NCBI GenBank assembly: GCA_002104905.1
Contig: MCFE01000622.1
Span: 1 to 51,964 of the forward strand
Direction: 5' to 3'
DNA length: 51,964 nucleotides
DNA from: Basidiobolus meristosporus CBS 931.73
Lineage: Eukaryota; Fungi; Basidiobolomycota
Shown here piece by piece: positions 649-51,742 of the stretch (its first letter is position 1; the number at the start of each line of letters is the position of its first letter). The notes under the pieces are model-generated. The model made no database searches, was not told where the DNA came from, and saw only the letters and a program-made list of their open reading frames with translations. The position numbers and the translations under genes were made by a program.

Positions 649-1815
649 ATGGCGGTTGTTTACGAACTGAACAACACAGTATTTTTAGTGTTGTGTGGAC
701 TTTCTGGATTCTGCAGCATAATACTCGGTTCCTCTCTTGCAGGAACTTTGGATATTAGGGATGTGGACCATCCTGAAAATACTCACAATAGTAACATCAA
801 AATGGATATGATATTACCATTATCTGTAATGCGACACTTCATCACACAGCTTATTGGGATCGAGTTGATCAAAACCAACAAAAAGTCTTTGAAAACGGTG
901 GTTCAGTCTGTCTTCGAGGGAAGCGCTTACTTGGTGAATCCCCTGGTGCAAAATAGCAATATAGGAATATCAGTTAGCGCCGAGAAATATGAAAGTAAAC
1001 CGAATCCATCCAAGAAACTTGAGTTGTCGCTAATAGATCACCCGGATATACGCATGGCAGTGGAATCTGGATGTCTAACAAGAGTGAAGGAAAAAGACGT
1101 ACCTTTGCTGATGCGCAGAGATCTAGCGGTGTATCGTATATCAGGGAACAGATTTATCTCTTACCTGGGAAGTATAACCGCACTGTGTGTGACCTCCCTG
1201 TGGATTCATTGCATCTATGTAGTTACTCGAAACTTGCAGAATCATAATGGCACACCTGGAGCTAAGAGGATCATGGTTCTAACGATTCCGTTGCTTTTTA
1301 TCCCACTACTCTGTAGAACATCATTATATAAGGGTCCTGTAATTGTCCATGTCGAGGATGATGATGGTTGTTCCAAAAGCATAAATTTCACTGAGTCAAA
1401 AATCCGTGGCAATGAATCCGATGAGAGGAACACAAGAGACGGCTCTGACGTAGGCGATTTGATTTATCAGAAGATGCTCATCCGTTATAGGATTCAGCGA
1501 ATCGTGGGCTCACTGTTCTTTATGCTGCTATTTTATGCAGTATACTTTGCGATATCTGCAATAGCTTCTATGGATACTGATACCGATTCGACAGATCAGA
1601 ATTCGTACTGGTATATATTTGGTTATTATGTTATAACTTTCACCAAACTCTGCAGACTTGCGGAACCAATGGTCCATTGTCTTTTGTGCTACATTTCGCT
1701 AGGTAAAGTCGTTTTTCATCAGCGAAAACCATTGCAAGTACTCTCGATGTGTGAGAAAATCTTAACAGTGATATATTATGTAGTTACCCCTTCGGCAAAT
1801 TTTAGCGCAGTGTAG
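649..1815 (+). CDS. Uncharacterised multi-pass membrane protein, array copy A (388 aa)
   Basis: Intact intronless ORF with family motifs RHFITQLIGIELIKT, QSVFEGSAY, KKLELS, SLYKGPV, RYRIQRIVGSL, LAEPMVHC. About 5-7 hydrophobic segments; TATAAA at ~597. Confidence 0.85.
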   Translation: MAVVYELNNTVFLVLCGLSGFCSIILGSSLAGTLDIRDVDHPENTHNSNIKMDMILPLSVMRHFITQLIGIELIKTNKKSLKTVVQSVFEGSAYLVNPLVQNSNIGISVSAEKYESKPNPSKKLELSLIDHPDIRMAVESGCLTRVKEKDVPLLMRRDLAVYRISGNRFISYLGSITALCVTSLWIHCIYVVTRNLQNHNGTPGAKRIMVLTIPLLFIPLLCRTSLYKGPVIVHVEDDDGCSKSINFTESKIRGNESDERNTRDGSDVGDLIYQKMLIRYRIQRIVGSLFFMLLFYAVYFAISAIASMDTDTDSTDQNSYWYIFGYYVITFTKLCRLAEPMVHCLLCYISLGKVVFHQRKPLQVLSMCEKILTVIYYVVTPSANFSAV

Positions 1816-2731
1816 GAAATAAAAGGCAATTTCTGTATACTTCAGATGTATACACCACGCTCATATTTGTCACAGTCAAAGCTGGTGATAATCCAGTAAA
1901 TGAAGACCAAGTTCCAAAACCCAGGCAGGAAGTTTTATCTGCATTTGTTACCGGCCTGGGTGGGTAGATAGAATTATCTGCTACGGTGACTATGCAGAGC
2001 CAGCAGTACATTGTCTAGAATGTCTGTTCCGACTGTGCATGGCGACTTTCTCCAATAGTCGTATCTTGAAAGCACTTTCGTATTGCGAAAATGGCTTGCA
2101 TTATATAGATCTCCTTCTATTACCTATGGCATTCTTTACCTTTTGAAAAAGCATCAGCATTAAATATAAGACCTGTAGATCTATGTTGCCGCGATGGTAC
2201 CTTCGGGAACCCTAATGATCATTAAAGGCTTCGATTGCGATCTACCATCATTAATATCGCATCACTCTCGTACATATCAATACCACGAATGTTGAAAAAC
2301 ATGCCCTAATAATGAGCCACAAGTTCGTTTTATTTGCATCATATTGTTTCATTCATTAATATAGTAAAGGGCTTCAGAAAATAGCATACAAAGGTTTCTC
2401 TTCTACAATAACGATGCCACGAATGGAAATGGATTGTACTTGAGTAAATTCATAAAATCGGTGAACTAACATCAACGCTCCACTCAAACAATGTGACCAG
2501 TATACTATGATGGTCACAAACACTTTCAGGAGTATTCATGTATATATATATGGTTGCACGCAATGGTGTGGTAATACTAGCTATATGGTATGTTTGAAGT
2601 GGACTATATAATAGCTTATTTCAGCACACTGTCTGTGATGTATCTGGACAAGTATGATGCAACGTATATCGTGGTAGTGGTTAAGAGGCCAAAATCGTTC
2701 GGTAATCCTATTCTTTCGACTGTTCAAAATA

Positions 2732-2895
2732 TAAACATGGCTATAAATCATTACCGCAACGTCATCAACTAATATCCTGCATTCCGTGAAGTATTTGTGT
2801 ATCTTTCTCCGGGTACCCAGGTGATGTACGCAACAACGTTTTCAGCGTGACCACAATAAAAAAGGGCTGTCAGATAGACAACCCAAGTTATCCAA
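2732..2895 (+). repeat. Non-coding direct repeat upstream of copy B (partner at 1-165)
   Basis: Direct alignment to 1-165. Confidence 0.9.
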
Positions 2896-3303
2896 TATAA
2901 GGCTTTATAATTTCTGGCCTTCCTATTGAATGATCCTGTGATTTCCAGAATACTTAGCTGGCCAATACATCCTACACGTATGAATATTGTTGTGTAAGGC
3001 GGATCGGTATGGTAAAATATGAGTATCATTATTCATGTGCTATCCGCCTGGCTCTGATAAGTCTATGGGCTGTCCACATGGTACTGGTAAATCCTAACAA
3101 TATATCAATACCACACTTCGCGGGGTAGAAGTTTATCCATCAACGAATGTTCGATAGCATACAAATCTAAGAATGAATGGATAAAACAGTTTCCGATTCG
3201 AACAGGCACATGATATGTTATTCAATTTACAGATAAATCCATTTGATTACGAGTATAAGAGCTCTCACATACTCTGGCATTTACGATACAACCTGATTTA
3301 ATT

Positions 3304-4422
3304 ATGCTTGACTACGTTTTGAAAGACACCACATTAAAAGTACTGTTTTCGCTTTCTTCGTCCTCATCCTTGATACTCCTACTCTTTTTTGGGGCGAAAC
3401 GCATTGTTTTCGAAGCAAGTTATGGTAAAAAAAGCGCCACTGGCGACTATGAGAGGGCTATAACATTCCCATTATTTGCGGTTCGATACTACATCACACA
3501 GTTGGTGGGAATTAAGTTGGTCAAAACTGATCAAAAATCGGTGAAAATGGTGATTCAGTCCGTCTTCTCAGGAAATGCCTTCTTGGTGAATCCTCGCCCC
3601 CAAAATCGCACAAGTACTGCAGTTGCCATTAAGAAGCTTGAGTTGTCACTGCTGGATCAACCGACCACTCGCATAAAACCAGAATACAGATCCTTGATCA
3701 GGGTAAAGGAAGAAGACGTACCCTTGCTACTGCAAAGTGATCTATCGGTGTATCGCATACCCAAAAACAAGATTGTTTCTTACTTTGGAGGTATAGGCGC
3801 CCTGTGCGTGATATCCCTGTGGATATATAACCTTTATATAATTATACGAAGCCTGAAAAGCCTTGGCTACATACCCGGAGCTAATGCGAACACAAACCTA
3901 ATGTGGCCGACCATGTTCATTCCTCTTCTATGGAATACCTCAGTATATAAGGGCCCGGTGTTTGTCGCAGTTAATAGCTGTCCCAAGAATTTGGATTTCA
4001 TTGAGCCACAAGCCCATAGCAACGGATCCAATGTAAGGTGCACCACAGAAAGCACAGACATAAGCATTTCGACTCAAAAAATACTCGTTCGTTATAGAAT
4101 CCAGCGACTCTTGGGCTCGCTACTTTATATGATCTTGTATTATGCAGTATACTTTGTAATAGCCGTATTAGCTACTATGGACACTATCATCGATACTGCA
4201 GATGAGAACCCACACCTTACTATGTTTGTTAACGGTTGTCTCGTTTTTCTCAGTTTCTGTAGACTTGCGGAGCCGATGGTACATTGCATTTTAAGCATCA
4301 TTTTATTAGGTCAAGTGGTCATTCATCACCAAAAACTATTACTAGTTCTCTCGATATGTGAGAAGATCTTATCAACGATCTATATTTTCGTTTTGCCTAT
4401 TGCAAATTTTGCCGTGGTATAA
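3304..4422 (+). CDS. Uncharacterised multi-pass membrane protein, copy B (372 aa)
   Basis: Intact ORF with RYYITQLVGIKLVKT, KKLELS, SVYKGPV, RYRIQRLLGSL, LAEPMVHC. Confidence 0.85.
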   Translation: MLDYVLKDTTLKVLFSLSSSSSLILLLFFGAKRIVFEASYGKKSATGDYERAITFPLFAVRYYITQLVGIKLVKTDQKSVKMVIQSVFSGNAFLVNPRPQNRTSTAVAIKKLELSLLDQPTTRIKPEYRSLIRVKEEDVPLLLQSDLSVYRIPKNKIVSYFGGIGALCVISLWIYNLYIIIRSLKSLGYIPGANANTNLMWPTMFIPLLWNTSVYKGPVFVAVNSCPKNLDFIEPQAHSNGSNVRCTTESTDISISTQKILVRYRIQRLLGSLLYMILYYAVYFVIAVLATMDTIIDTADENPHLTMFVNGCLVFLSFCRLAEPMVHCILSIILLGQVVIHHQKLLLVLSICEKILSTIYIFVLPIANFAVV

Positions 4423-4908
4423 TATAATAAATGGTCTCAAAAACCGGTAAATAAAGTTTGGACTCTTACTATACAAGAATATAAGGGATATATACAACTC
4501 AATTTGAATACGTACACCTATTAGCACATGCAGTCACTCGATCATGTTAAGATCCATTTCCAGAAATCCGGAATCTCGGAAACCCATAAACCAACGCCCA
4601 CATGGTTCGAATATCTCACCTAATTAATTCTTTTACGCAGGGAAAGTTATCCAATACTAGCAAGATAAAAGAAAACGTGACTTTGGCGTATGCACGGACT
4701 GTCCGAATGACTGTGTTTAGTCTCAATGATTGAGAGATAAATTATTGGCCACCAAGGAATATTCGATACCCTTTAATCTAAAAATGTACGAATAAAGTTA
4801 TGCTGTTCTTTTGGAGGTGAAGGTGAACCTGCAAGGAATATTCGATACCTACACACAAGAATGCACAGAAAAAATTGGTTCGATTTCAAAACACACGGCA
4901 TATGATTA

Positions 4909-5873
4909 ATGGATGCTATAGCTGTGTTGGGGGTTTTATTCATTTCGCGGTATATGTGAGATCAGTTTAGACCAATATCGAGCTATTGCCTTTCCATTGT
5001 TTGCAGTCTGACTTCTTGTCACAGAGTTTGTGGGGATTGAGTCAATCAAAACCGGTCAAGAATGTACGAAAATGGCGATTCAGTCTGTCTTCGAGGGAAA
5101 TGCATTCTTTGTTGATCCTCGTACGCAAAGCGACATGACAAGCATTAAAAATGGCGCTGGGAAAGATCAAAGCAAACCAAACCCATCGAAGAAACTTTTT
5201 AGTATCAATTGATGAACCGAATGCTCGCATAACAACAGAATATGAATATCTGACAAAGGTGAATGAAGAAGGTATCTATCTGCTACTACAAAGTAATTTA
5301 TTGGTGTATCGTATAACTGAAAACAAGACTATATCCTACGTGAGCAGTATTGGTGTTCTCTGTATGACGTTCTTCTGGATGTATAGTATTTATGTAATTA
5401 CATGAAGCCCGATGAACGTTGGTTACATAAGTGGAGCTAAAAAGATCAGTATAAGGACATTAATCACTGTGAATGCAGATGATTGTCCTATTAGTATATA
5501 ATATATAGAATCATCCAATGTAAACAAGAAAATATGGAATTCCAACACCGATAATTTGACTCAAAAAGAAGCTCTCATTCATGTTCTCGGCTCATTGTTC
5601 TATATGATCTTGTTCTATTCAGCATACTGTAGATATGCAGTATTGGTTGTTCCTGAGGTCAATGCAGAATCCACAGAACAGAAAATGATCGGTTTCCCAG
5701 CGTTTTTTCGGTACAGTGCATGTCTAGAGCCAGCGACGTATAGCATTCGATGTTTGATCTCCTTGAGTCAAGCAAAATTCAGTCGACCTCAATTATCGCT
5801 TTGGCGTGAGTTTGTTATTTCACTCATACATGCCATTCTCATACCCGCGACAAATTTACTTCCGTCGTTGTGA
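4909..5873 (+). pseudogene. Degraded array copy C
   Basis: Family motifs are split across frames with stops: AIAFPLFAV*LLVTEFVGIESIKT, IQSVFEGNAF, LLVYRITE, VLGSLFYMIL, CLEPATY (ORF pieces 5030-5212, 5151-5405, 5556-5873). Start approximate. Confidence 0.8.
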
Positions 5874-7033
5874 AAGAACGTGTTGCCAAGCAAATTAATT
5901 ATAGAGAACCCAATCACTAACTCAACGCTACGATCTAGTGATCGGAGAGTGAATAAAGAGCGATGAAAAGCTTTGAAATGAGTGACCCGTTTCTCGTACG
6001 GGGCTGTTGGTGCATTGCATATTACTAGGTCAAGCATTTTTTCGACACCAAAAACTGTTGCATCTTCTCTCAATTTGTGAGAAAATTTTAACAGGGGTTC
6101 ATCGAATTGTTTACCCTCTTGCAAATGCAACCGCACTATAAAGCATTAATGGACTTCAAGTATTAGAATACACAGTTCTTAAAAACGTTATATATATATA
6201 CTGATTTTGTGCCACTGTAGCTTGTTTCTGTGTATTCCAAGAGTTGGCACCACTACGTATACAATGTTCTGACTTCACTCTTGTACAGGAATGTGTAACC
6301 GTGAAGTTGATAGCTTAGCACCCAACTTACGCGATTAGCATATATAGAAGTGCTATACACAAGGTTGTATTTAGCACTTTATCATGATCTGCCAAGACGT
6401 AATAAGATTTTCAATTCTTGAAGTGCATACACTCTGCTGTACGAATACTCCCATATGAAATAGAACAATAAATGCTTTGAATACAAATTTGACAGAGGCT
6501 GAGAAGCCAATACTATGTAAGGTAATGACTGCGACATTTTCCCTGATTGTGTATTTCAATACAACTAGCCCAAGAATCTAAGTCTAAAATGGCAATAAGC
6601 GCATGTGTAGTTTTGTGCCTATGCTGAGCACAGGCAGCCACAGGCATGGTCAATGTTTATTCAATGAGATCACCTATGAATACTTGGCAGTTTAAATTTC
6701 AAACGATCCACAAGGTTCTGAGATTGACCTATATTTGAATGAGACTGTTTAAGGCATATCAGAATGGGCCTAGTAGAAATTGTTATGAAATTTGCCACTA
6801 CCACACCTGTGAGGGTAAAAGTTCATCCATTGGAGAGAATGTTTTACCTTCCCTAGCATTGAATAGATGCGTATTTTAGGACCTGATAGGTATTGGATAT
6901 AAAGTACTCTGAGTACTCTGCTTCACATATTTCCGGATAACAGCATTATTATCTGATATGTGTAGGAGAATCAACAAATATAAAACCTTTCACATGCCTG
7001 CTCCTGACTTTGAACTTCAAGCCTGCAGTTAAT

Positions 7034-8188
7034 ATGTTTGACTCGGAGTTAAGTGAATATGTGCTTTTGGTGCTTTTTTGCCTTGTTGCTTTCTTTAGCT
7101 TGATGCTTCACTTTAACCTCATAGTGAAAAAAATCGTTTTCAATAGAAACCGGCGGGAGAAACCAACCTGCAGGGATTATGATCTAGCAGTTGGATTTCC
7201 GATATGTGCACTTCGACACTACATCACACAGCTTGTGAATATCGAGCTGATCCCAACTAACCAAAAAGTCCTGAAAGAAGTTATTCGATCTGCCATAGAG
7301 GGTAGTGCTTACTGGGTTAATCATCCCGAACGAGATAATGCTGCAAATGCCTCAAGTAGCACCGAGAATACCGACATTGAATCAAAATCATCCAAGCTGG
7401 TCCTATCGCCAGTAGATCAGCCAGACATTCGCATATCCACAGAATATGGACCTCTGATCAAGGTGAAGGATGAAGACATACACTTGCTATTGGAAAACGA
7501 GATATCGATATCACATGTACCAGAATCGAAGCTGCTTTCTTACCTGAAGAAATTGGGTTTTTGGTGTGCACTACTCTACTGGGTGTATGTAATTCACGAG
7601 ATTTTCCAGAGCTGGCTGAGCCTCGGCTACGTAACCGATGGTCAGATCCTCACAAATCTAACGAATCCATTCTTCCTTATTCCGCTTCTGCACAACACCT
7701 CGGTGTATAAGCCGATGCTATTTATCACCGTAGAAACTGGTGATTTTCCTCCAAGCATGGCTTTTGCTAAACTGGATGCACGAGATGAAAAATCCAATAC
7801 TTGTGATGCAAGCAATACACCGGAAATTCCTGGTTCAAGCAAATCAATGCAGAGGGAAGCCCTTATCCGATATAGCATTCAGCGAATTTTGGGATCCATA
7901 CTGTACATGATCCTATATTACCCACTATATTTTGGATTGGCTGCATTGACTACTTCGAGAGCCGATACTGCCTTTAGCCAAGTGGAATTGACCTACCTAA
8001 TATTCATCAGGTACTGTCTACTTGCAGAACCGATTGTGCCTTGCATCCGTAGCTTAGTTACATTAGGGCAAGTAACGTTTTATCATCCAAATGTATTACG
8101 ACTACTCTCATGGTGTGAATTTATCTTAATGCATGTACATGCCATTCTTTTACCTATTTCATCTATACTATGGATTTTCTTAATTTGA
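7034..8188 (+). CDS. Uncharacterised multi-pass membrane protein, copy D (~384 aa)
   Basis: Intact ORF with RHYITQLVNIELIPT, SVYKPM, RYSIQRILGSILYMILYYPLY, LAEPIVPC. ATG 7034 chosen over TTG 7010 because of the TATA box at ~6979 and family alignment. Confidence 0.85.
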   Translation: MFDSELSEYVLLVLFCLVAFFSLMLHFNLIVKKIVFNRNRREKPTCRDYDLAVGFPICALRHYITQLVNIELIPTNQKVLKEVIRSAIEGSAYWVNHPERDNAANASSSTENTDIESKSSKLVLSPVDQPDIRISTEYGPLIKVKDEDIHLLLENEISISHVPESKLLSYLKKLGFWCALLYWVYVIHEIFQSWLSLGYVTDGQILTNLTNPFFLIPLLHNTSVYKPMLFITVETGDFPPSMAFAKLDARDEKSNTCDASNTPEIPGSSKSMQREALIRYSIQRILGSILYMILYYPLYFGLAALTTSRADTAFSQVELTYLIFIRYCLLAEPIVPCIRSLVTLGQVTFYHPNVLRLLSWCEFILMHVHAILLPISSILWIFLI

Positions 8189-8559
8189 GAAATGAACTAT
8201 TATCAAATGCTCTCAATGCTGGCGAACCATAGCTTAATAAACAGAGGCATTGAAATTATGTAAAGTAAATAAAGAGCACTAGCTAGTTTGACGATATGTA
8301 TAGAAAATGGATAGTAGTTGTAATTATCGACTGTGAGTGTTCCAAGTTTTCAGCATACTACAAAAGATCTTCATGATGTATGTGGTAGATTCAACGGAAG
8401 TAGCGATGTAAATCATTTTGACAGAAGGATCACTAAATCACAAATTCACTTTAACTGTTGCGAAAGGTTTAAATGATTTAGTGCATCAGTCAATATCTTT
8501 ATGACTGATATTTTAGGCGACTACAGGAATGCCAAAGATAGATTGATATTTTCTGTGTA

Positions 8560-9105
8560 CAGCATCCTTATATCAGGGCCTCCTGTCGCCATGGACATTG
8601 ATGATTGTCCCTTTGGCATGGAGCTTGGCACCTGTATCAATGAATTCAATATATGCAAGACAAAAGCAAATCCTGTTATTGGCGATTTGAATCGAGTTAT
8701 TTATCCACACTAGCTACTATGGCTTTTGTGACTGTATCTACAGCTCAGCAACTGAAACACTCCAATTTTTTTATTTCATACCTCGAATTAGAGTCAGTAG
8801 ACTTGCGGAATATAATGCATCATGTAGTATTGTTCACTAGATACAATATCAGCCCTTTTATACCAACTATTTAATTGTGCTTAAATGGGGTTGTAAATAC
8901 TTTAATACTACTTCTTACTTGGTATCTCGCAAAAAGAAGATACCATATAAACTGTATTTGAAGATGACACACCAAAATCATCCAAGAAACTTGAAATGTC
9001 GCCGATAGATATGTCGAACGCTTGCATCATGAAAAAAATCGATATTTGACAAAGATGAAAGTTGGCACATTGAGAAGATATCGAAATATCGGGCCATTGT
9101 TTGAA
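8560..9105 (+). pseudogene. Highly eroded family fragments
   Basis: Short matches: GPPVAMDIDDCP (~8575), LATM (~8712), RLAEY (~8800), PKSSKKLEMSPID...RYLTKMK (~8970-9060). Boundaries approximate. Confidence 0.55.
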
Positions 9106-9436
9106 GCACCAATGATGAACATGTTTTACGATCCCAAAAGATGGGACCTAATCAATATAGAATATTAGTCCACTGGCCCACCACATGACTTTGGTAAGCT
9201 TCGGGAACAGATCAATCAATGCCATATTCCAGGGAGGTAAACATTCAACCTTTGAAGAACATCCGATATCATCCAAATCTGAGAATCCACGGTTAATATT
9301 ATATTCGATTTGAACGGGTATGGAACGCTTGCAAGCTGGTGTTGTGGGTGCTTCAACTGAATTCCATATAAATCCCGTGGAATTGAAATAACGAAGTCCT
9401 CAAACAACCACTTTCGCATTTAACTCTAGGTTGAAT

Positions 9437-10595
9437 ATGTTCGACTATCGTCTGGACGACACTGCATTTGGAGTGTTGCTTCTACTCTCAGGATCCACTA
9501 GCCTGCCTCTCTTCTTCTTCCTTCTAGTGAAACGCAAAATATTCAACAACGATGAATTCATCTCCCATGTCAATTGCTTTTGCTATTCAATTTCCAGTAC
9601 TTGGAGTGCGGCATTTCATCACACAGCTTGTGGGAATTGATTTGGTCAAAACTGACCAGAAAATCAGGGGAATGGTGGTTCAGTCCGTCTTCGATGGCAA
9701 TGCCTACTTGATTGATCCTCAGGCGCTAAATAGCAGCACAGACATTGCAGATGGCACTGAGGAAGTCAAAGGTGAACCAAAAGCATCCAAGAAGCTTGTC
9801 TTATCAGCGGTTGATCAATCTGCAACTGGCATGACCATAAACTCGAGATATTTGACGAGGATGAAAGAAGAAGATGTACCCCTGATACTAAGCAGTAATC
9901 TATCGGTGTATCGCATACCAGAATCCAAGGTTATCACCTACTTGGGAAGTATAGGCTCGCTGTGCGTAGCTTCTCTGTGGATATATAGCATTTGTGCAGC
10001 TAAACGAAGCCTGCAAAGCCTTGGTTACATACCTGGAGCTAGCATGATCGAGTTTCTAATGTGCCCGGTGCTCTATTATCCATTTCTGTGTAAAAACTCA
10101 TTATACAAGGGTCCCGTTTTTATCAATGTGAAAGTTGGCAATTATCCCTCCAGAAGGGATTACTTAGAGCCTGACACAAATAGTAATGGACCCGGTGTGT
10201 GGAAGTCATAAGTAAGTGCTGACGTTCTCGATTTAACTCATCAGAAGTTGCTCCTCCGCTATAGGGTTCAATGAGTTGTAGGCTCGCCCGTCTATATGTT
10301 ACTATATTATCCAGTATACTTTGCAATAGCCGCACTAGCTACTATGGATACTGGCACTGTTCCTATAGCTTGTGGACCGTTATTATCCAAGTTCAATTAT
10401 TGGTTTAATGCTTATATCACATTCTCTAGACTTGCGGAGCCGGTAGTGCATTGCCTTGTATGTTTCATACTATTAGGTCAAGTAGTCAATCGTCATCCCA
10501 AGCCGTTGAAAGTACTCTCGATATTTGAGAATATCCTCACTGTGATATATGTTTTGGCTTTAGCTGCTTCAAATATTTTAGCTATAAGACATTAA
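9437..10595 (+). pseudogene. Array copy E, frameshifted with premature stops
   Basis: Frameshift near 9580 relative to copy H, TAA at 10209-10211, and TGA at ~10272 where paralogs have CGA (RIQR). Otherwise full length. Confidence 0.85.
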
Positions 10596-11162
10596 AGTGT
10601 CTCAAAACAATATGTTGACAGCGATAAGTCTCACAATCACAACAATTAGAATTCTTCATTTTCTATGCAGTGGTTGACTATTTCATATATCTGATGTATG
10701 GCAATATTATGACGTCATAATATTACATCATCTATGTTAACAAATATGATCAGTGCGTGTTTGGAATGGCAATCAGTGCATGTGTACTTTCATGCCTATT
10801 CTGTTCACAGTCAGTCACTGGCATCACATATGAGATCTATGAAATATCTCGATAAATTATGATTCAGGCAGTTCACTCTACAATCCAGGGAGCGCTTACT
10901 TCGTTATATGACGAATATTCAACTAGACTAGGGCTCTCGGTAATGCGCCACAGAGATAAAAGTTTAACCATCGCATGATATTCGATATGATCCAAATCTA
11001 GGAATGTACCAACAAATTTGCTCTCGACCTGAACAGCCACGGCTAATGATAATCATAGTTCATCTCTATTAAATATGCTTCAATAGTGTTCAGCGAACTC
11101 CTGCTGAAACCACTACATAGTGTACCTCTGAAAATCTTGCTTCTACGTTTTTACATAACTCA

Positions 11163-12317
11163 ATGATGAGTGACTATAGACTGGACAACACTGCATTTAA
11201 TGTGTTATATGGCATTTCTATATTCTCCAGTGCAATACTCAAAATAACTTGGGATAGTCGCAGTGTAAATCATCCTGAAAATTACCTCAATAGCGACTAC
11301 GAAATGGCTATGGTATTTCCATTATACGCCATCCGTCACTATATCACGCAGCTTGTGGGCACTGAGTTGGTCGATATTGATCAAAAATCATTGAAAACGG
11401 TGATTCAGTCTGTCTTCGAGGGACGTGCTTACTTGATTACTCCTATAGTGCAGAGTAGTAAAATAGGCACCGCAGAAGGCACTGAGAAGGTTGAAAGTGA
11501 ACGAAACCAGTCCAAGAAGCTTGAGCTATCACTTTTAGATCACCCGGATACTCGCATGACAGCAGAATACAAATCTTTGATGAAGGTGAAGAAAGAAGAC
11601 ATACCCTGGCTACTGCAATGTGATCTATCGGTGTATCGTATGCGAAAAATCAAGATTATCTCCTACTTTGAAAGTGTAGGTGCACTCTGTGTGACATCCC
11701 TGTGGATCCATAGCTTATATGTAGTTGCACAAAGCTTGCAGAATCAGATTGGCTTACCTGGAGCTATGAAGATCACACGTCTAATGATTCCGTTGCTTTT
11801 TATTCCACTCCTATGTAAAACCTCATTATCGAAGGGCCCCGTATATATCACAGCGAAAGTTGATGGTTCCCTCAAAGGCAAAGGTTTCATTGAGTCAAAC
11901 ATTCGTGGCAATGGAATCAATGCGCAGAAGGCAGCAGATAGTTCCGAAATAGGTGAATTAACTCCTCAGAAAATACTCATCTGCTATAGGATTCAACGAC
12001 TCTTGGGCTCACTACTCTATATGATTTTGTACTACGCAGTGTACTTCGTAATAGTCACATTAGCTACTCTTGATACCGACCCTGACTCTACAGACCTGCT
12101 TATGTATATTTTTAGGCTTTCTTATTGTCTTGTATTTATCAGCAAATCCTGCATTCTTGCGGAGCCAATGGTTCATTTCCTTTTGTGCTCTACTTTGCTC
12201 GCCAAAGTAGTTTTTCATCAGCAAAAACTATTGCAAGTACTCTCGATATGTGAGCTGATACTAACAAGGATACATCTTATTATTCTTCCTTTTGTAAATG
12301 CTACTGTACCGATATAG
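11163..12317 (+). CDS. Uncharacterised multi-pass membrane protein, copy F (384 aa)
   Basis: Intact ORF with all family motifs; upstream element most similar to that of copy A. Confidence 0.85.
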   Translation: MMSDYRLDNTAFNVLYGISIFSSAILKITWDSRSVNHPENYLNSDYEMAMVFPLYAIRHYITQLVGTELVDIDQKSLKTVIQSVFEGRAYLITPIVQSSKIGTAEGTEKVESERNQSKKLELSLLDHPDTRMTAEYKSLMKVKKEDIPWLLQCDLSVYRMRKIKIISYFESVGALCVTSLWIHSLYVVAQSLQNQIGLPGAMKITRLMIPLLFIPLLCKTSLSKGPVYITAKVDGSLKGKGFIESNIRGNGINAQKAADSSEIGELTPQKILICYRIQRLLGSLLYMILYYAVYFVIVTLATLDTDPDSTDLLMYIFRLSYCLVFISKSCILAEPMVHFLLCSTLLAKVVFHQQKLLQVLSICELILTRIHLIILPFVNATVPI

Positions 12318-13368
12318 TTATCGGCTTTACGATCCCAGTGTATCGTACCTAACCATGATACATATAATCTTATTGCCTATTGAAAGCTGTGCCACTTTAG
12401 CTTATTTCTTTATATTCTAAGAGTTGACTCCACCTCGGTTCATAAAGGTGTGTCTGTTTGCTATTTATCATAACAGCTGGCAAGATATCACAGGGTTGTG
12501 TTGTACAATCTCTCAAAGTACGACCTACTATGTGGATATTCCAATACGAAGTAGTACATTAGATGCCATTAGATTCATGATACAGGTTGAGAAGCCTAAA
12601 TCATCTAGTATAAACCAGAGTTGCAAGCGGATGTAAGTTACATGAACAAAACAATTGGACATGAGTTATCCGAAATACATAAACCGGGTACCAATCAGAT
12701 GGGATTATATGAAACCAGGCTCAAGAGTTTAATCCCAGATTGTCAACGTGCCACCCGCATGGTTCTGGTTAACCCCGAGTGATAATCAATGCCATTCATA
12801 GAAGGCAAATGTTAGCCCATTAAAGAATAGTCGATATCATCCACATGGAGGAATGCACTGATAAAATCGTATTAGGCTTTATCACGTATAGAATTTCTCT
12901 CACGTATTAGTTGGATACATGTATTGTCATTATGAAATACGCGAGATTCTTTCATCATCCACATCATAACTCCATACATTCGTCTCCCATATTGTGCAAT
13001 ACCTGGGTGTATACGTCACTTGAATTTGTCACGGTAAAATTTTATTATTTTCCCCCATACGAATTTTACAGGGCAAGGTGCCATCAATCCCATACTTCAG
13101 AAGGTAAACGTTTAGCCTTGTGAGAATATTCAATAGCATCCAAGTCAAAGTATCCACCGATAATATTGTATTCAGAACAAACGATGATTGATAGCAACTA
13201 AATCTAGGAATATACGGATAAAATCACTTTTGAATTCAGCAGGTACACCATATGGTTAATATCATTCGTTGCTTTGTACATAATTCTACCCACTCCCGCA
13301 TTCACTATCCAATGTCCATCATACTTTTAATACATTTTATTGTTTTGGCAGCTGCCAATTTTACCAAA

Positions 13369-13660
13369 ATGCAAGAATATGAAGAGCTAGACTATGATTT
13401 TTACGGCACTATATTTGCAGTGTTACTCGGACTTTCCTTGTCTTTGAGTCTAATATTCTTGAACAAACTTTTCAAGAGACCCGATGCTTTCAAAATACTA
13501 AATTATCGTCTAATAATAAGAATAATAATCCTGATAAGCGAGTCGCTTTCACACAGAGCAATCTCTCTCTTGCTATGGCATATTCATTAGCCGGAGTCCG
13601 ACACTATATCACGCAGCTTGTAGGAATCGACTTGGCCAAAACTGACAACAAATCTTTATT
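13369..13660 (+). pseudogene. 5' fragment of a family copy
   Basis: DYDFYGTIFAVLLGLSLSL, a frameshift, then AGVRHYITQLVGIDLAKTDNKSL, then abrupt truncation. Confidence 0.7.
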
Positions 13661-13888
13661 GAGTCAGATCTCCACCGGTAGGACTTGCTTTTGACTTCCT
13701 CGTATTGACTCCATTACTATAGGTGTCAGACTCAATTTAATCCGTGCTGGAGACATAATCATCTCCTTCCACAGCGACAAACACAGGGCCCTTATATAAG
13801 AAGGTTTTACATAACAGAGGGGGAAAGATAAGCGTGTTCATTAGAAACATGATCCCATTTGCTCCATTTGCTCCAGGTATGTAGTCTT
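13657..13888 (-). pseudogene. Internal fragment of a family copy, inverted
   Basis: Minus strand reads DYIPGANGANGIMFLMNTLIFPPLLCKTFLYKGPVFVAVEGDDYVSSTD*IESDT...GDLTQ*. Confidence 0.75.
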
Positions 13889-13902
13889 AGTACTGACAAG
13901 CC

Positions 13903-14053
13903 TTTTATTAGTTGCACATACAACATGCTGAAATTCCCTACAAGTCCATATCAACATCCATGTGGGCCACGGCGCATTTCTAATAGATTTGAATTTAACA
14001 GATGGGATATGGTAGATGATGAGCAAGATGATATGTATATATATATATATATT

Positions 14054-14100
<47 letters not shown>

Positions 14101-14268
14101 CATAATGAAAATGAGAGAATACAGCCATTGCTAAACTTGGCAAATCCTAATCCATTTTCTCGTTATGCTTGTCACCTATCCACCAGGACCATGTCATGCA
14201 GAAAGAATAATTATGCATCAATTTCAGAAGCAAATAGCCAAGCGAGAGCATCATCGATGCCCTCCAAC
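13903..14268. repeat. Left inverted repeat (IR-L): 3' tail and 3' flank of copy G, with (TA)n and (TG)~20 microsatellite
   Basis: Reverse complement of 17174-17520. About 100 bp (14097-14200) is identical. Confidence 0.92.
14036..14096. repeat. Compound microsatellite (TA)n-(TG)~20
   Basis: Directly visible; a shorter (CA)n partner lies at ~17346-17368. Confidence 0.95.
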
Positions 14269-15280
14269 GACGAATTATTTCTTCATCTGAGGCAATGTAG
14301 CAAAGAATACAATACAGAACTGGTTCTGCAAGCAAACAGTACCAGTAAAATACCCCCAAACGAGTCGTTTGCTGCCATTTAGCTAGGGAACTTAATCCAA
14401 AGTATGCTAGATAAAATGGAATCATGTAGAGGAACGAACCCAGGAATCGTTGAATCCTATACCAAGTGAGCACCTTCTTTGGGTTTGGAACGTCTACCCC
14501 AGGGTGTTCTTTTGACCGAATCTCATTAAACATGAACTCTTCGTCCGGCTTAACTGAAGATTTACTCAAGCAAGGATCATCACCAGTTTTCAGAGTAATA
14601 AACACGGGCCCCTTGTATATGGAATTGTTATAGAAAAACGGAATAAACAACGCCGGACGCATTAGATCTATAGCATCCCGACATTCAGGTATGCAACCCA
14701 AGCTCATAAAGCCATGAACTATTACATAAGCTTCAAACAACCAGTAGGAAAGTACGCACAGACAGCCCAACTTCGAGAGATAATACAAGACTTTTGAATC
14801 GGGCAGATAATATACGGATATATCATTCTCTAGCAGCACGGGTATGTCTGCTTCCTTCACTTTTGTCAAATATGTATAATCTGTTGTTACGCGAATGCCT
14901 GGCTGATCGATTGGCGACAATTCAAGCATGTTGGATAGTCGAGATTTGGAATCTTCAATCACAATTTTTCCCGTATCGCTTTCTTGAGTGAGAGCACCAA
15001 CCCAGTAGGCAGTACCGTCGAGGGCTGAGCGAAGAATCACATCCATGGATCTTTGGTCTGCTTTGGTCAACTTACTACTCATGAGCTGTGTAATATACCT
15101 TCGGACTACGGTCGCTGGATTTAGGGTAACTAGATCAATGCATTCTCTAAACGTGTAATACCGTGTAGTGGCGATATTAAACCTGACAACAGGACTGCAA
15201 AGCCACAAAAAGTACGAAATAAAGATGGCAGAAGATCTTAACACAGTATTTGTAGTGCCGTTCAGTTGTAATTCAATCAT
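14147..15280 (-). CDS. Uncharacterised multi-pass membrane protein, copy G (~377 aa), inverted
   Basis: RRYITQLMS, SIYKGPVF, WYRIQRFLGSFLYM, LAEPVLYC. ATG 15280 (MIELQLNGT) chosen from the TATA box at ~15325 and the family N-terminus. Confidence 0.82.
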   Translation of the reverse strand: MIELQLNGTTNTVLRSSAIFISYFLWLCSPVVRFNIATTRYYTFRECIDLVTLNPATVVRRYITQLMSSKLTKADQRSMDVILRSALDGTAYWVGALTQESDTGKIVIEDSKSRLSNMLELSPIDQPGIRVTTDYTYLTKVKEADIPVLLENDISVYYLPDSKVLYYLSKLGCLCVLSYWLFEAYVIVHGFMSLGCIPECRDAIDLMRPALFIPFFYNNSIYKGPVFITLKTGDDPCLSKSSVKPDEEFMFNEIRSKEHPGVDVPNPKKVLTWYRIQRFLGSFLYMIPFYLAYFGLSSLAKWQQTTRLGVFYWYCLLAEPVLYCILCYIASDEEIIRRWRASMMLSLGYLLLKLMHNYSFCMTWSWWIGDKHNEKMD

Positions 15281-15610
15281 TAGTAAGGACTGATGTCCAA
15301 CAAACTGCCATGAAGTCGGCCTTATATACATCGATTTCCTACCACCTGTTACATTTCCGTGTCTGGATTTGGATATAGGTGAGCCACACGATTAACCCAT
15401 TTCCATCCACCCATTCCTGAGTCTCAACTGAAAAAACATTCCCTGATAGTCGAAATCTCACATATCCAATTACGCAATTCGTGAGCCTTACCGCTGCCAA
15501 TGTATTACTACAGGCTTTACGAATTTATACTCATATCTGAGTGGAGCGGCGAATATTGTTATTGCAACGGACCACACTCTGTACGCCAATTTTTGAGACA
15601 CTTTAATGTC

Positions 15611-16771
15611 TTATATAAATAAAGCATTTGTAATAGACAAAACAAAACAGTATATCGGAGTGAGGGTATTCTCAAATATCGAGAGTACTTTCAACAGCTT
15701 GGGATGACGAATGACTACTTGACCTAATAGTATGAAACATGCAAGGCAATGCATTACTGGCTCCGCAAGTTTACAGAATGCGATACTAGCATTAAACCAA
15801 TAAATAAACTTAGATAATCGCGGCCCCAGAGCTATAGGAACAGTGTCAGTATCCATAGTAGCTAGTGCGGCTATTGCAAAGTATACTGCATAATACAATA
15901 ACATATAGATGAGTGAGCCTACAACTCGTTGAATCCTATAGCGGAAGAGTAACTTCTGGTGAGTTGAATTGATAATATCAGAGCTTGATTTTGCCTTCCA
16001 CACATCGAGTCCATTGCTCTTGATATCAGACCCGATGTAATCCTTACTGAATGGGCCATCATCACCTTTCACATCGACAAACACAGGGCCCTTGCATAAT
16101 GAGGTTTTACACAGAAGGGGGATAAACAACCCTGGTAATATTACGTGTCTGATAAGTTTAGCACCAGGTATGTATCCAAGGCTCCTCAGGCTTTGTGTAG
16201 CTGCACAAATGCTATATATCCACAGAGAAGCTACGCACAGTGAGCCTATACTTCCCAAGTAGGTGATAACCTTGGATTCTGGTATGCGATACACCGATAG
16301 ATTACTGCTTAGTATCAGGGGTACATCTTCTTCTTTCATCCTCGTCAAATATCTCGAGTTTATGGTCACGCCAGTTGCAGATTGATCAACCGCTGATAAG
16401 ACAAGCTTCTTGGATGCTTTTGGTTCACCTTTGACTTCCTCAGTGCCATCTGCAATGTCTGTGCTGCTATTTAGCGCCTGAGGATCAATCAAGTAGGCAT
16501 TGCCATCGAAGACGGACTGAACCACCATTCCCCTGATTTTCTGGTCAGTTTTGACCAAATCAAATCCCACAAGCTGTGTGATGAAATGCCGCACTCCAAG
16601 TACTGGAAATTGAATAGCTGAACGGTAATTGATATGGGAGATAATTTGACGCTCATCTATCTTGAAACTTGCACGTTTCAATACAAGAAAGTAGATGATC
16701 AACAGGTTGAGACATAGTGGGAGTAGAAGTAACACTCCAAATGTAGTTTCATCCAGACCGTAGCTCATCAT
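15611..16771 (-). CDS. Uncharacterised multi-pass membrane protein, copy H (386 aa), inverted
   Basis: Intact ORF with all motifs; TATA box at ~16815 and upstream element at 16868-16935 on the minus strand. Confidence 0.85.
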   Translation of the reverse strand: MMSYGLDETTFGVLLLLPLCLNLLIIYFLVLKRASFKIDERQIISHINYRSAIQFPVLGVRHFITQLVGFDLVKTDQKIRGMVVQSVFDGNAYLIDPQALNSSTDIADGTEEVKGEPKASKKLVLSAVDQSATGVTINSRYLTRMKEEDVPLILSSNLSVYRIPESKVITYLGSIGSLCVASLWIYSICAATQSLRSLGYIPGAKLIRHVILPGLFIPLLCKTSLCKGPVFVDVKGDDGPFSKDYIGSDIKSNGLDVWKAKSSSDIINSTHQKLLFRYRIQRVVGSLIYMLLYYAVYFAIAALATMDTDTVPIALGPRLSKFIYWFNASIAFCKLAEPVMHCLACFILLGQVVIRHPKLLKVLSIFENTLTPIYCFVLSITNALFI

Positions 16772-17173
16772 GATAAGAGTTGGAGTTCAATACAAAAGCA
16801 ATTGTGTGGGTGCTTTTATATTCAGATTCCATTATCCGTAACTGCTGAAATCGAATACGATTTTTTCCGTGGATGCTTTGATTTGGATGATTTCGAATAT
16901 ACTACAATGGGTAAACATTTACTTCCCTGGAATATGGCGATATCCACATTTCAAGGTGGTGATTGTTGATGATGCTATATCAATGTTTTCCGCAAAATGC
17001 AGGACAACTTATAAGGGGACCCAGATATTGTTGAGCTCACTATCAAGTGTGCGGTTTATGATGACATTCAAATAGCAACTTGGCGTCATAACAATATTTT
17101 TTGCGAAATATAGAACAATACAGGGGGATTTTGTAGAAAGCCCATAAATTGCTTAACTCGATATTGAGTGTGT

Positions 17174-17520
17174 GTTGGAGGACATCAATGATGCACTCGC
17201 TTGGCTATGTGTTTCTGAAATTGATACATAATTCTACTTTCTTCATGACATGGTCCTGGTGGATAGGTGACAAGCATAACGAGAAAATGGATTAGGATTT
17301 GCCAAGTTTAGCAATGGCTGTATTCTCTCATTTTCATTATGATTTACACACACACACACACACACACATAAATATATATACATATACATATCATCTTGCT
17401 CATCATCTACCATATCCCATCCGTTAAATTCAAATCTATTAGAAATGCGCTTTAGCCCACATGGATGTTGATATGGACTTGTAGGGTATTTCAGCATGTT
17501 GTATGTGCAGCTAATAAACA
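17174..17520. repeat. Right inverted repeat (IR-R), carrying an in-frame alternative C-terminal tail of copy G
   Basis: Plus strand 17175-17295 reads WRTSMMHSLGYVFLKLIHNSTFFMTWSWWIGDKHNEKMD*, versus the G tail WRASMMLSLGYLLLKLMHNYSFCMTWSWWIGDKHNEKMD*. Confidence 0.92.
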
Positions 17521-18382
17521 GCCTACCAGTGTTGTGTTGCGAGTAGTAGGATGTTAACTTTCAAAATAACACAACGGCCTTAACTAAGGAATGTATCCTG
17601 TTTGCAGCATGATATAGCTCGCCTTTACACGTCACAATCGAATTGAAGCTGAATAGCGTAGCAGGTTTTTTTTGCCATAGTTTTCTACGACCACTTACAT
17701 TGTGCTATAGTTTAGAGGCTTTTGAAACTTGCAATACCAATGATGTGGTCAACTTAACCCAAACGGGATGTGCATCCGATGCAATGATCAGTAAGCTATG
17801 GGTTCGCAATTGTTCATTATCTGAAGGGATATAGCATACTTGAGACAAGCCACATTGGCTACATTAGAGGTTGATGCCGAATCCACAAATTAGAATAGAT
17901 AGATAACCTCACCTTGATTGTATTATACTCTATGGAAGTTGTTACGATGTATAATATACATTCACTTGTTAACCGCTCAACTCCTGAACTCTCTTTTAAA
18001 TTGTTCTGCATTTTGGAGAATATATTATTGTAGCATCATCGACAATCACCATTTTGCCATGTGAACATGGCTGTGTTAGACAAATCAATATAGCAGATTG
18101 CGAAAATAGAGTTCGTTGGTCCACCGCATGACTTTGGTAAGCTTCGTGAACTGCTCAATCAATGCCACATTCCAGGGAGGTAAACATTCAACCTTTGAAG
18201 AACATCCGATATCATCCAAATCTAAGAATCCACGGTTAATATTGTATTCGCCTTGAACGGGTATGGAACGCTTGCCAGCTGGTGTGTAGGTGCTTAACTA
18301 AATTTCATATAAATCCCCTGGAATTGAACTAGCAAAGCCCTCAAATAACCACTTTCGTAGTTAACTCCAGCCTTACGTGATT

Positions 18383-18930
18383 ATGTTCGACTATCGTCTG
18401 GACGACACTGCATTTGGAGTGTTGTTTCTACTCTCAGGATCCATTAGCAAAAGCATCCAAGAAGCTTGTCTTATCAGCGGTTGATCAATCTGCAACTGGC
18501 ATGACCATAAACTCGAGATATTTGACGAGGATGAAAGAAGATGTACCCCTGATACTAAGCAGTAATCTATCGGTGTATCGCATACCAGAATCCAAGGTTA
18601 TCACCTACTTGGGAAGTATAGGCTCACTGTGCGTAGCTTCTCTGTGGATATATAGCATTTGTGCAGCTACGCAAAGCCTGAGGAGCCTTGGATACATACC
18701 TGGAACTAGCATGATCGAGTTTCAAAAGGGCCCGGTGCTCTATTATCCATTTCTGTGAAAAACCTCATTATACAAGGGCACCATTTTTGTCAATGTGAAA
18801 GTTGGTAATTATTCCCCCAGAAGGGATTACTTTGAGCCTGACACGATATTCGAGAACATCCTCATACTGATGCATGCTATATTTTTACCTGCTACAAATA
18901 TGATTATGACAAGCCATCAAGATGCTTCAA
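18383..18930 (+). pseudogene. Array copy I, chimeric with two internal deletions
   Basis: Promoter 18110-18380 matches 9165-9435. Relative to copy E it lacks ~9502-9777 and ~10178-10519, and it contains copy-H-like patches. End approximate. Confidence 0.85.
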
Positions 18931-19400
18931 AAATTGGCTTACAAAGTGTGGTCTGTTGTGTTGCAATCGCAATATTCGCAGTTCCACTTAGATAGGAGTG
19001 TATTGATCTAATCTCCATATAGTAGATATAGAGAGAATTGATGATACTTGTGACTTCGGAACTTCTCACGTCTGAGAGTTCGCCTGGATACTCATTTAAT
19101 AATCGGTCAAGCTTATTTGTAAAAGGTTACATTATGCTACTCCAGTTATATATCAGTAGTATTCATGGATATGAATATGGGGTTATAAGGATTATCCAAG
19201 TGGTCCTGGTAGGATCCAACAAAAGATCTATCAATGCCGTTTTTAGAACGGTAAAGGTATAGCCGTCAAAGAACATCCGATACCATCCTTTAACGATGAT
19301 ATATAGAATCAGCAAGCACGCCATATGATTGCTGTGCTAAGGATAGGATATAAACCACTCATACGCCATTCTTGTGTACCATTTCCAGCACTTATTCATT

Positions 19401-20534
19401 ATGGTCGACCTGGGGCTAAATGGAACTGCATTTGCAGCGCATTCTATTCTTGTTTTGCTCTTAACCTCGATACTTCACGCCATCCATTTAGACAAACGTA
19501 TTGTGATGGCAATGACATATTTATCCAGCCGGCCTATGGATTCTACCATTAGCGACTACGCTCTAGCTATTCGGTATCCATTATGTGCAGTCCGATACTA
19601 CATCACCCAACTAGTGGATATTGATCTGATTAAAACCAGCCGGAAGCCCTTGAAAATAGTGATGCAGTCTATTTTTGAGGGTAGTGCTATCTGGGTTAAC
19701 CCCCTCGCACTTCGTGGCATAAAAAGTGTTGCAAGTAGTCATGAGATAGACGATCGTGAGCCAAAATTTTACAAGAAGCGTACCCTCTCGCTGATAGTTC
19801 GACCAGATAATCGCATAACAATAAAACACGGACCATGGGAGCAGGTAAATGCCGGATCCGTATCTTTACTAGTGGAAAGCAAGCTGTCAGCGAGTCATAT
19901 GCTGGAAACGAAGCTCACCTATTACCTGAGACGTATAGGTTGTCTGTGTGTTACTTCATACCTGATACATGGCATCTATGCAATTATTCAAAGCTTAAGG
20001 AACTTTGGCTATATACCTGGGGCTCACAAGATCATGGGTTTGATATCGCCGTTTCTTTTTGTTCCTTTTCTATGCAATACATCAGTATTCCAGGCCCCTG
20101 TTCTCGTTACGGTGGAAGTCGATGACTGCTCCGTGCACAATCAGGGTCAAGGATCCAATTCAAGCAAGACAGAAGAAAGCTCCAAAATGGATAGCTCAAC
20201 TCAACGGGCGATGCTCATCCGCTATAGGATCCAACAACTCGTGGGCTCGCTACTCTTCATGTCCCTGTACTATGCAGTATTCTCGCTAACCTTATCATTA
20301 TCTGCTATGGATAATGATTCTGACGCAATAAGTCATGTACTTTACTATTATTTAATGCTTGGCAGATTCAGTAAGATTGCGGAGCCAATGGTCCACTGCT
20401 TTTTATGCTTCATTTTATTAGGACAAGCAGTCTTACATCAAGGACAACTATTACAAGTACTCTCAATGTGTAAGTATGTCCTAATAAGGATACATACTAT
20501 TGTTTTGTTCGGGGCATACTTTGCCCTTCTTTAA
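19401..20534 (+). CDS. Uncharacterised multi-pass membrane protein, copy J (~377 aa)
   Basis: RYYITQLVDIDLIKT, QSIFEGSA, RYRIQQLVGSL, IAEPMVHC. ATG 19401 (MVDLGLNGT) follows the TATA box at ~19349. Confidence 0.85.
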   Translation: MVDLGLNGTAFAAHSILVLLLTSILHAIHLDKRIVMAMTYLSSRPMDSTISDYALAIRYPLCAVRYYITQLVDIDLIKTSRKPLKIVMQSIFEGSAIWVNPLALRGIKSVASSHEIDDREPKFYKKRTLSLIVRPDNRITIKHGPWEQVNAGSVSLLVESKLSASHMLETKLTYYLRRIGCLCVTSYLIHGIYAIIQSLRNFGYIPGAHKIMGLISPFLFVPFLCNTSVFQAPVLVTVEVDDCSVHNQGQGSNSSKTEESSKMDSSTQRAMLIRYRIQQLVGSLLFMSLYYAVFSLTLSLSAMDNDSDAISHVLYYYLMLGRFSKIAEPMVHCFLCFILLGQAVLHQGQLLQVLSMCKYVLIRIHTIVLFGAYFALL

Positions 20535-51333: not shown

Positions 51334-51351
51334 TTAGGGTTAGGGTTAGGG
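51334..51351 (+). repeat. Interstitial telomeric tract (TTAGGG)3
   Basis: ttagggttagggttaggg lies between units 2 and 1. Confidence 0.9.

Positions 51352-51707: not shown

Positions 51708-51742
<35 letters not shown>

Follow-up and report, generated by a model that had tools for sequence, protein, structure and literature searches.

An inverted repeat enclosing two genes of a Basidiobolus membrane-protein array is probably the scar of an inversion and not a switch

In a subtelomeric, plus-oriented tandem array of membrane-protein genes of the fungus Basidiobolus meristosporus CBS 931.73, two genes, G and H, lie on the opposite strand between the arms of an inverted repeat of ~365 bp. Both arms can be read as an end of gene G, and the original prediction left two alternatives, a fixed inversion scar and a live, shufflon-like switch. 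Here, we analysed this locus in a window of 51,964 nucleotides, positions 1 to 51,964 of contig MCFE01000622.1, and found that it is probably the fixed structural scar of a one-off inversion, later partly converted. Of the two alternatives, the scar fits the data, while the switch fails on the geometry of the tails, on the promoters and on the repeats, which are short and ~10% diverged. The features of the locus are given in Table 1.

Table 1 Features of the G-H locus, with positions in the window.
Feature	Position	Strand	Description
Broken copy F, N-terminal fragment	13533..13658	+	~residues 39-88
Decayed family fragment	13638..13883	-	~residues 197-280, with stops, just outside IR-L
IR-L	13892..14268	-	last 40 G codons (14268 down to 14147), then ~255 bp of G 3' flank including (TA)n(TG)20.5
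Identical core	14074..14198 = 17368-17244		125 bp, longest identical run between the arms
Gene G	14147..15331	-	annotated model 14150-15280, 377 aa
Inner variant tail	14199..14268	-	9 mismatches, 8 amino-acid differences, identical tracts <=13 bp
Gene H	15611..16771	-	386 aa (annotated model 385 aa)
H upstream region	16772..17173	-	inside the inverted segment
IR-R	17174..17530	+	orphan G-tail copy 17174-17295 including stop, then 3' flank with shorter microsatellite
D'	18117..18920	+	partial D-like copy with internal deletion
Pseudogene D tract	9574..10020	+	98-100% identical, inverted, to H 16178-16628

The scaffold ends in a telomere, with telomere repeat from position 51708, and the locus is ~34 kb from it. 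A strand survey of the family members places A, B, C, E and I on the plus strand and leaves G and H, bracketed by the repeats, as the only intact minus-strand members, which had been proposed from the sequence. The statement is true of intact genes but not of fragments, as the decayed minus-strand fragment lies outside the repeats. G is a divergent member, with ~33% amino acid identity to its paralogs. H is a mosaic of conversion tracts common to D and D'. Within the upstream region of H, the segment 16848-16938 is similar to the upstream regions of D and D', while no relatives of the segment 16939-17173, which ends with GTGTGTG at the junction with IR-R, were detected.

The proteins of this family had no match in Pfam when 11 members were searched, even at E = 1. 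A profile search of the PDB with the family gave 0 matches, and the ESM Atlas gave sub-threshold matches only. The AlphaFold2 model, with a mean pLDDT of 52.9, was too poor for a fold search. Of the 11 family representatives given by an exhaustive HMM search, 10 were traced, and every one comes from Basidiobolus, six of them from other scaffolds or from B. ranarum and four from this scaffold, which suggests that this membrane-protein family is lineage-restricted and specific to Basidiobolus. Two of the B. ranarum relatives carry the automatic UniRef names 'Odorant receptor' and 'Gustatory receptor', for which no support was found. A homologous-protein search with G returned G itself alone, and the 90% clusters of G and of H have one member each.

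The repeat search found two adjoining pairs of arms, 14051-14268/17174-17391 (218 nt, 91% identity) and 13892-14076/17346-17530 (185 nt, 92% identity), which are merged by blastn into a single alignment of 13904-14268 with 17518-17174 (365 bp, 90.1% identity). In a MAFFT alignment, homology drops abruptly at 14268/17174 and at 13892/17530. These three comparisons agree with the inverted repeats of ~350 bp that had been predicted. The arms differ by 23 mismatches and one 20-bp gap in 377 columns, and this gap corresponds to the length difference of a (TA)n(TG)n microsatellite, which has TG x20.5 in the left arm and AC x11.5 in the right arm. A weak plus-strand match to the family at 17747-17962 (E = 0.002) had suggested homologous truncated genes beyond both arms. 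When the outer flanks were aligned directly, no similarity was found past the outer arm edges, and this idea was rejected.

Palindromes that arise as artefacts are near-perfect and are usually located at contig ends. The repeat described here is located mid-scaffold, it is diverged and its arms are 2.9 kb apart, so it is not a missed-adapter palindrome. The locus is known from one assembly and its context is repetitive and subtelomeric, but an inversion produced by a mis-join or by a chimeric read is very improbable, since the arms are 10% diverged, their microsatellites are unequal and the 2.9-kb spacer is unique and holds two intact ORFs. Moreover, the assembly is a PacBio assembly (PMC7466969), with reads that greatly exceed the arms in length.

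Each arm contains an in-frame, indel-free tail of 40 G codons, and both tails end with the same TAG stop codon. Inside the repeat, 8 residues distinguish the two tails (A/T, L/H, L/V, L/F, M/I, Y/S, S/T and C/F), and the codon at the edge adds an R/C difference. This codon comparison reproduces what had been described for the tails, including the clustering of ~8 differences near the inner edge. Nine of the codon differences are non-synonymous and one is synonymous, as would be expected if one copy had drifted without constraint. The tail in IR-R is an orphan, with in-frame stops directly upstream and no gene body there. In a low-confidence model, the tail region falls in the final helix predicted for the family.

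The 125-bp core extends over a portion of the TG tract and ~50 nt of the 3' flank into the gene, where it includes the stop codon and the last 16 codons of G. About 101 bp of it is non-microsatellite sequence, in line with the predicted identical core of ~100 bp beside the (TG)n/(TA)n tract. An identical run of this length has a probability of ~8e-4 under uniform mismatches, and a Fisher test of the core against the rest of the arms gave 2.7e-4. A 39-mer from the core is found in exactly two copies in the window, one in each arm, and an exact scan of JGI metagenomes for it gave 0 matches. Outside the core, the inner coding part of the arms is 12.9% diverged and the non-coding outer part 6%, a difference that is not significant (p = 0.11). 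From this pattern of identity, a later gene conversion is the best reading of the core, and this would imply that the conversion from arm to arm was recent and that there has been at least one recombination between the arms. Since the parts outside the core are 6-13% diverged, concerted evolution of the arms is weak.

The pair of arms at G is not special in this array, as the inverted repeats that H makes with D and with D' exceed it in length and identity. Compared with the G pair, the inverted tract common to H and D (~450 bp) is both larger and better matched, and in D' the segment 18448-18708 is 96-99% identical, inverted, to H 16159-16422. Because mosaic tracts of 98-100% identity link H on the minus strand with D and D' on the plus strand, conversion between inverted copies is shown to be routine in the array.

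The geometry of the locus is such that recombination between the arms would flip the segment 14269-17173 and restore its plus orientation, which was correctly predicted. It was also predicted that G would receive the other tail by this flip, and this part does not hold. Simulated crossovers at 14100, 14160 and 14198 left the 377-aa G protein unchanged, and those outside the core likewise returned an identical protein. G was altered solely by simulated crossovers within identical tracts of <=13 bp. G keeps its own tail in these flips because the codons that vary are situated between its body and the core. Furthermore, the upstream regions of G and H travel inside the segment, so that its orientation leaves the pairing of promoters and genes unchanged. 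No on/off promoter logic is seen at the locus, and no silencing landmark is adjacent to the invertible block.

These results bear on the reading of the locus as a live, programmed device for switching or diversity, in which either the inversion itself or the use of the orphan tail as a silent conversion donor would alter the last helix of G. Two in-frame, indel-free tails with a common stop, which differ at 8 residues in the last predicted helix, are what such a device would contain. In bacterial shufflons and in the G segment of phage Mu (Gin/gix), DNA inversion swaps C-terminal coding ends on a constant body, and it does so with a dedicated site-specific recombinase and short crossover sites located between the constant and the variable coding parts. 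In contrast, homology at the present locus stops exactly at the constant/variable boundary, where a crossover site of this type would be needed, so the variable residues stay joined to the body of G. A Pfam scan that covered 12 large, uninterrupted ORFs of the scaffold gave no recombinase domain. There is a single donor, and the cluster of G has no member with the variant tail, but other data for the species seem to be missing from the database. A programmed device is thus the least credible of the readings considered here, and we regard it as extremely unlikely.

Fungal inversions that do operate as flip/flop systems provide a second comparison. In the mating-type switching of Ogataea polymorpha and Komagataella, a segment also lies between inverted repeats and is inverted by recombination of the arms. 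In Ogataea, the repeats are 2 kb and identical, and an induced inversion places MAT genes under centromeric silencing or releases them from it (PMC5720833). Unlike in Ogataea, the arms at the present locus are 365 bp with 90% identity, of which only 125 bp are identical, promoters and genes move together, and no change of expression or product is predicted from the upstream regions and the simulated flips. Another likeness is the 24-kb flip/flop of Saccharomyces cerevisiae chromosome XIV, where inverted paralogous sequences homogenised by conversion also flank an invertible segment of a fast-evolving family linked to a chromosome landmark (the Centroid gene family). Its inverted repeats of ~4 kb are almost identical and under continual concerted evolution, and no flip was seen in ~53,800 mitoses (PMC9731477); here, 125 bp are homogenised, in a locus known from one assembly.

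The same precedent, which is driven by homogenisation of the inverted repeats, lends some plausibility to a polymorphism with rare flips, in which crossovers in the core would let both orientations segregate among strains with no programmed function. The perfect core and the (TG)n tract that adjoins it speak for such crossovers. However, even the ~4 kb of the precedent were mitotically stable, the identical stretch here is far shorter, and the rest of the arms has diverged. Mitotic recombination in yeast is limited by the length and the identity of the repeats, and a divergence of 2% alone causes a ~5-fold drop (PMC6511840). We consider this polymorphism improbable. The broader proposal that the locus still recombines at a low rate, either with orientations segregating among Basidiobolus strains or with the orphan tail as a silent conversion donor of variants for the last predicted helix of G, is slightly less probable still. 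Since a conversion tract is present, the arms have interacted, and an occasional crossover with re-inversion may occur over evolutionary time.

The reading that we favour, a fixed scar, would involve the following steps. A block with H and G would have been inverted once within the plus-oriented array. The right-hand break would have been a staggered one that spanned the final 40 codons of G and ~240 bp of 3' flank; alternatively, a replication template switch would have copied the same stretch. The stretch would thereby have been placed at both ends of the block in opposite orientation. The copy in IR-L would have moved with the block and kept G intact, while the copy in IR-R would have stayed behind and become a dead orphan tail, with a spacer of normal length before the next plus-strand copy. 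The arms would then have diverged to ~90% identity, and gene conversion would later have re-homogenised the 125 bp beside the microsatellite, leaving an arrangement that is probably stable at present.

Several observations are consistent with this course. An otherwise unique sequence is duplicated in inverted orientation at the ends of the segment, over 365-377 bp, with sharp homology boundaries and one non-functional copy. The spacer from the stop codon of IR-R (17293-17295) to the start of D' (~18380) is ~1.09 kb, within the range of the other intergenic spacers of the array, and this normal length suggests that IR-R sits at the ancestral position of the 3' end of a plus-oriented G. The ancestral plus orientation of the block itself would follow from the plus bias of the array alone.

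This arrangement is similar to the staggered-break duplications of the Drosophila melanogaster group (Ranz et al. 2007, PMC1885836), in which an ancestrally unique stretch of gene and flanking sequence occurs, in inverted orientation, at both ends of the inverted segment. The Drosophila duplications range from 46 bp to 1.9 kb, with a median of 321 bp and an identity of 88 +/- 5.4%; duplication at one breakpoint was found in 12/18 cases, and one copy is usually non-functional (PMC1885836). The repeat at G is likewise a few hundred bp long, 90% identical and one-sided, with one non-functional copy. The two cases differ in that the fly genes are single-copy while the fungal genes belong to a subtelomeric array of paralogs. 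At its left junction, the fungal locus also has extra fragments, a sign of further events, and its arms contain a conversion tract of later origin.

A single clean event cannot explain everything at the locus. The decayed minus-strand fragment and the broken plus-strand copy F adjoin IR-L, so more than one rearrangement has occurred at the left junction. No family similarity was found across the predicted ancestral junctions (16939-17173, both strands), and neither of the simple reconstructions yields an unbroken gene there. A single ancestral order was rejected, as there are no family residues at the junctions and the history comprises more than one event. The divergence of the inner coding part of the arms, nominally higher than that of the outer part, would also count against the scar, but the difference is not significant.

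It is also conceivable that the inverted repeat came first and that the G-H block was turned around once by a later ectopic homologous recombination between its arms. In that case, the orphan tail would be what remains of a former inverted partial copy of G, or of a plus-strand G-like paralog that lost its body. The result would still be a fixed scar. The array is rich in partial copies in both orientations, its inverted paralogs demonstrably exchange sequence, and the identical core indicates at least one recombination between the arms. However, this history requires two events where one is enough, and homology stops sharply at the inner edge of IR-R, with no decayed G-like body upstream. We consider it unlikely, though the strongest of the alternatives to a fixed scar left by a staggered break or template switch.

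The finding is an ordinary one and opens no long-standing question. It does carry a caution, as in-frame alternative gene ends within inverted repeats resemble a switch. The decisive criterion is the position of the variable residues relative to the stretch that can recombine, and at this locus it rules out the swapping of tails. Should low-rate recombination prove true, the locus would be a eukaryotic, recombinase-free analogue of cassette variation of C-termini in a subtelomeric, orphan, receptor-like family. As a probable scar, it is a tidy fungal case in which an inversion spared a gene by duplication of the 3' end of this gene, and it illustrates how, in a subtelomeric birth-and-death array, gene conversion acts on paralogs of opposite orientation.

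G and H, two paralogs of an array of membrane-protein genes, are the only intact minus-strand copies in the array and, as originally predicted, they are bracketed by inverted repeats, IR-L and IR-R. The tandem array spans 649-20534 and each paralog has about 386 aa. The window is one complete scaffold of 51,964 bp whose last stretch (51708-51964) consists of 42.7 TTAGGG copies, so the array region is subtelomeric, at 31-51 kb from the chromosome end. Just inside the telomere repeat, 50923-51690 contains a direct repeat of 300 bp in two copies with 97% identity and a separation of 468 bp. An assembly artefact at the G/H locus is very improbable, since the CBS 931.73 genome was obtained by PacBio sequencing (PMC7466969).

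Paralog copies of the array and arms of the inverted repeat
Feature	Coordinates	Strand	State
A	649-1815	+	intact
B	3304-4422	+	intact
unnamed copy	4961-6129	+	broken
C	7010-8188	+	intact
D	9437-10586	+	broken (pseudogene)
E	11163-12317	+	intact
F	~13533-13658	+	broken
IR-L	13892-14268		left arm
G	14147-15331	-	intact
H	15611-16771	-	intact
IR-R	17174-17530		right arm
D'	18117-18920	+	broken, partial
I	19374-20534	+	intact

The arms of the repeat are 365 bp long, 90% identical and about 34 kb away from the telomere repeat. Their 377-column alignment contains 23 mismatches and a single 20-bp gap, where a (TA)n(TG)n tract differs in length between the arms. The homology stops abruptly at the inner and outer edges, and direct alignment shows no similarity beyond the outer edges. 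IR-L comprises the last 40 codons of G, followed by roughly 255 bp of 3' flank. IR-R has an orphan copy of this tail on the plus strand, with in-frame stop codons directly upstream, where no G-like body was found. Codon comparison agrees with the prediction of two in-frame, indel-free tails that share a stop and differ at about 8 residues: 8 residues inside the repeat and the edge codon give 9 non-synonymous codon differences against 1 synonymous, a ratio as expected from an unconstrained orphan copy. The nine variant positions all lie at 14199-14260, between the body of G and the core. This core, predicted as an identical stretch of about 100 bp next to a (TG)n/(TA)n tract, is a 125-bp identical run (14074-14198 = 17368-17244). 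Such a run has a P of about 8e-4 if mismatches are evenly spread (Fisher test, 2.7e-4). Every descriptive point of the original prediction was borne out. Divergence is 12.9% in the inner part of the arms versus 6% in the outer part, which is not significant (p = 0.11). The core, which has the TG microsatellite at one of its borders, is best explained as a later gene-conversion tract.

Copies in opposite orientation often undergo conversion in this array. H and D are 98-100% identical, in inverted orientation, over about 450 bp (9574-10020 vs 16628-16178), and 62-76% identical over much of their remaining length. H and D' are likewise 97-100% identical over about 270 bp (16159-16422 vs 18448-18708), with adjacent stretches again at 62-76%, and the identity among these three copies is a mosaic of conversion tracts. 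These inverted repeats are longer, more identical and better substrates for recombination than the G pair, which is therefore no specially maintained element.

When inverted repeats recombine, the sequence inside the crossover point remains attached to the inverted segment. Inverted versions of the segment were constructed in silico with the crossover placed at six different positions. With an exchange at 14100, 14160 or 14198, the 377-aa G protein is the same as at present. Residues of G are altered only by crossovers inside the variant zone, and the complete IR-R tail needs an exchange in the last 8 bp of homology. Because identical tracts in the variant zone measure 4-13 bp, and mitotic recombination in yeast is limited by repeat length and identity (2% divergence caused a drop of about 5-fold in one assay; PMC6511840), the core is the only plausible exchange site, and an exchange there leaves the protein unchanged. 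The upstream regions of G (15332-15610) and of H (16772 to at least 16938, homologous to those of D and D') are inside the inverted segment, so its orientation re-wires no promoter. A flip thus provides neither an alternative product nor on/off logic. The proposals that recombination gives G the other tail, and that the cassette is a live shufflon-like switch, were not upheld, and a programmed tail-swapping switch is scarcely credible. No recombinase domain was found in 12 large ORFs, a scan that was not exhaustive.

The MAT switch of Ogataea polymorpha uses two identical 2-kb repeats and moves genes into centromeric silencing (PMC5720833), and the flip/flop region of Saccharomyces cerevisiae chromosome XIV has almost identical, continually homogenised 4-kb repeats, yet about 53,800 mitoses and 950 meioses yielded no flip (PMC9731477). 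The G/H arms, in contrast, are far shorter and less identical than either pair. A rare flip/flop on an evolutionary timescale is quite unlikely.

Of 29 fixed inversions in Drosophila, 17 have inverted breakpoint duplications of unique sequence, with a median of 321 bp and an identity of 88 +/- 5.4%. For 12 of 18 cases the duplicated stretch originated from a single breakpoint, and as a rule one of the copies is dead; the mechanism given is staggered breakage with subsequent fill-in and end joining (PMC1885836). The G/H repeat agrees on every count (size, identity, one-sidedness and dead copy), which favours the fixed inversion scar of the original prediction: the locus is probably such a scar, in which duplication at the breakpoint was later followed by a conversion tract. 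The staggered break would have fallen inside the coding sequence of G, and G would have survived it because the duplicated stretch took its 3' end along. IR-R is separated from D', the next plus-strand copy, by a spacer of about 1.09 kb, a length in keeping with the array's other intergenic spacers, which suggests that G originally lay at IR-R in plus orientation. Both this arrangement and the present-day stability of the block are inferred from a single assembly. That the repeat existed beforehand, and that ectopic recombination then inverted the G-H block, is unlikely.

At the left junction, which is messy, the plus-strand N-terminal fragment F directly abuts a minus-strand fragment (13638-13883) that covers family residues ~197-280, contains stops and lies immediately beyond the outer edge of IR-L; 13533-13883 is a second, smaller rearrangement scar. 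The 9-bp unit CCATTTGCT is repeated 2.3 times at 13855-13875. On the right, no family similarity was found in 16939-17173, so neither simple reconstruction produces an unbroken gene at the predicted ancestral junctions. More than one rearrangement event has taken place at this locus. The upstream region of H meets the inner edge of IR-R at GTGTGTG (17168-17175), at a distance of about 170 bp from this arm's (AC)n tract; speculatively, this could be breakpoint microhomology with the nearby TG tract or a templated insertion. Between IR-R and D', the plus-strand segment 17747-17962 has weak similarity to family residues ~264-326 (E = 0.002) and is probably a very decayed family fragment.

The family had no match in a Pfam search and no sequence relative in a PDB search. 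It has just 11 representatives among 1.84 billion proteins; 10 of these were traced, either through listings or because they map to the scaffold of the window, and every one is from Basidiobolus. The AlphaFold2 model is helical, of low confidence (mean pLDDT 52.9) and too poor for testing the fold; its final helix corresponds to the last 40 residues. Two distant members from Basidiobolus ranarum (P0007 and P0008) have the automatic UniRef names 'Odorant receptor' and 'Gustatory receptor', which have no support from Pfam, the PDB profile search or the ESM Atlas. The 671-aa annotated model P0002 (ORX84051.1), which matches the window at 11121-12107 and 12493-12633, joins copy E to additional upstream and downstream pieces; this public gene model probably extends too far. 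On a 137,095-bp scaffold of the same genome (P0010-P0012), ORX95030 and ORX95032 are 200-aa proteins of the C-terminal half that share one 90%-identity cluster, and their accession numbers flank that of the full-length member ORX95031. Here, at a second locus, a family gene may lie between duplicated 3' halves. No other copies of G or H were found in protein collections, and an exact scan of JGI metagenomes for a 39-mer of the core gave no match.
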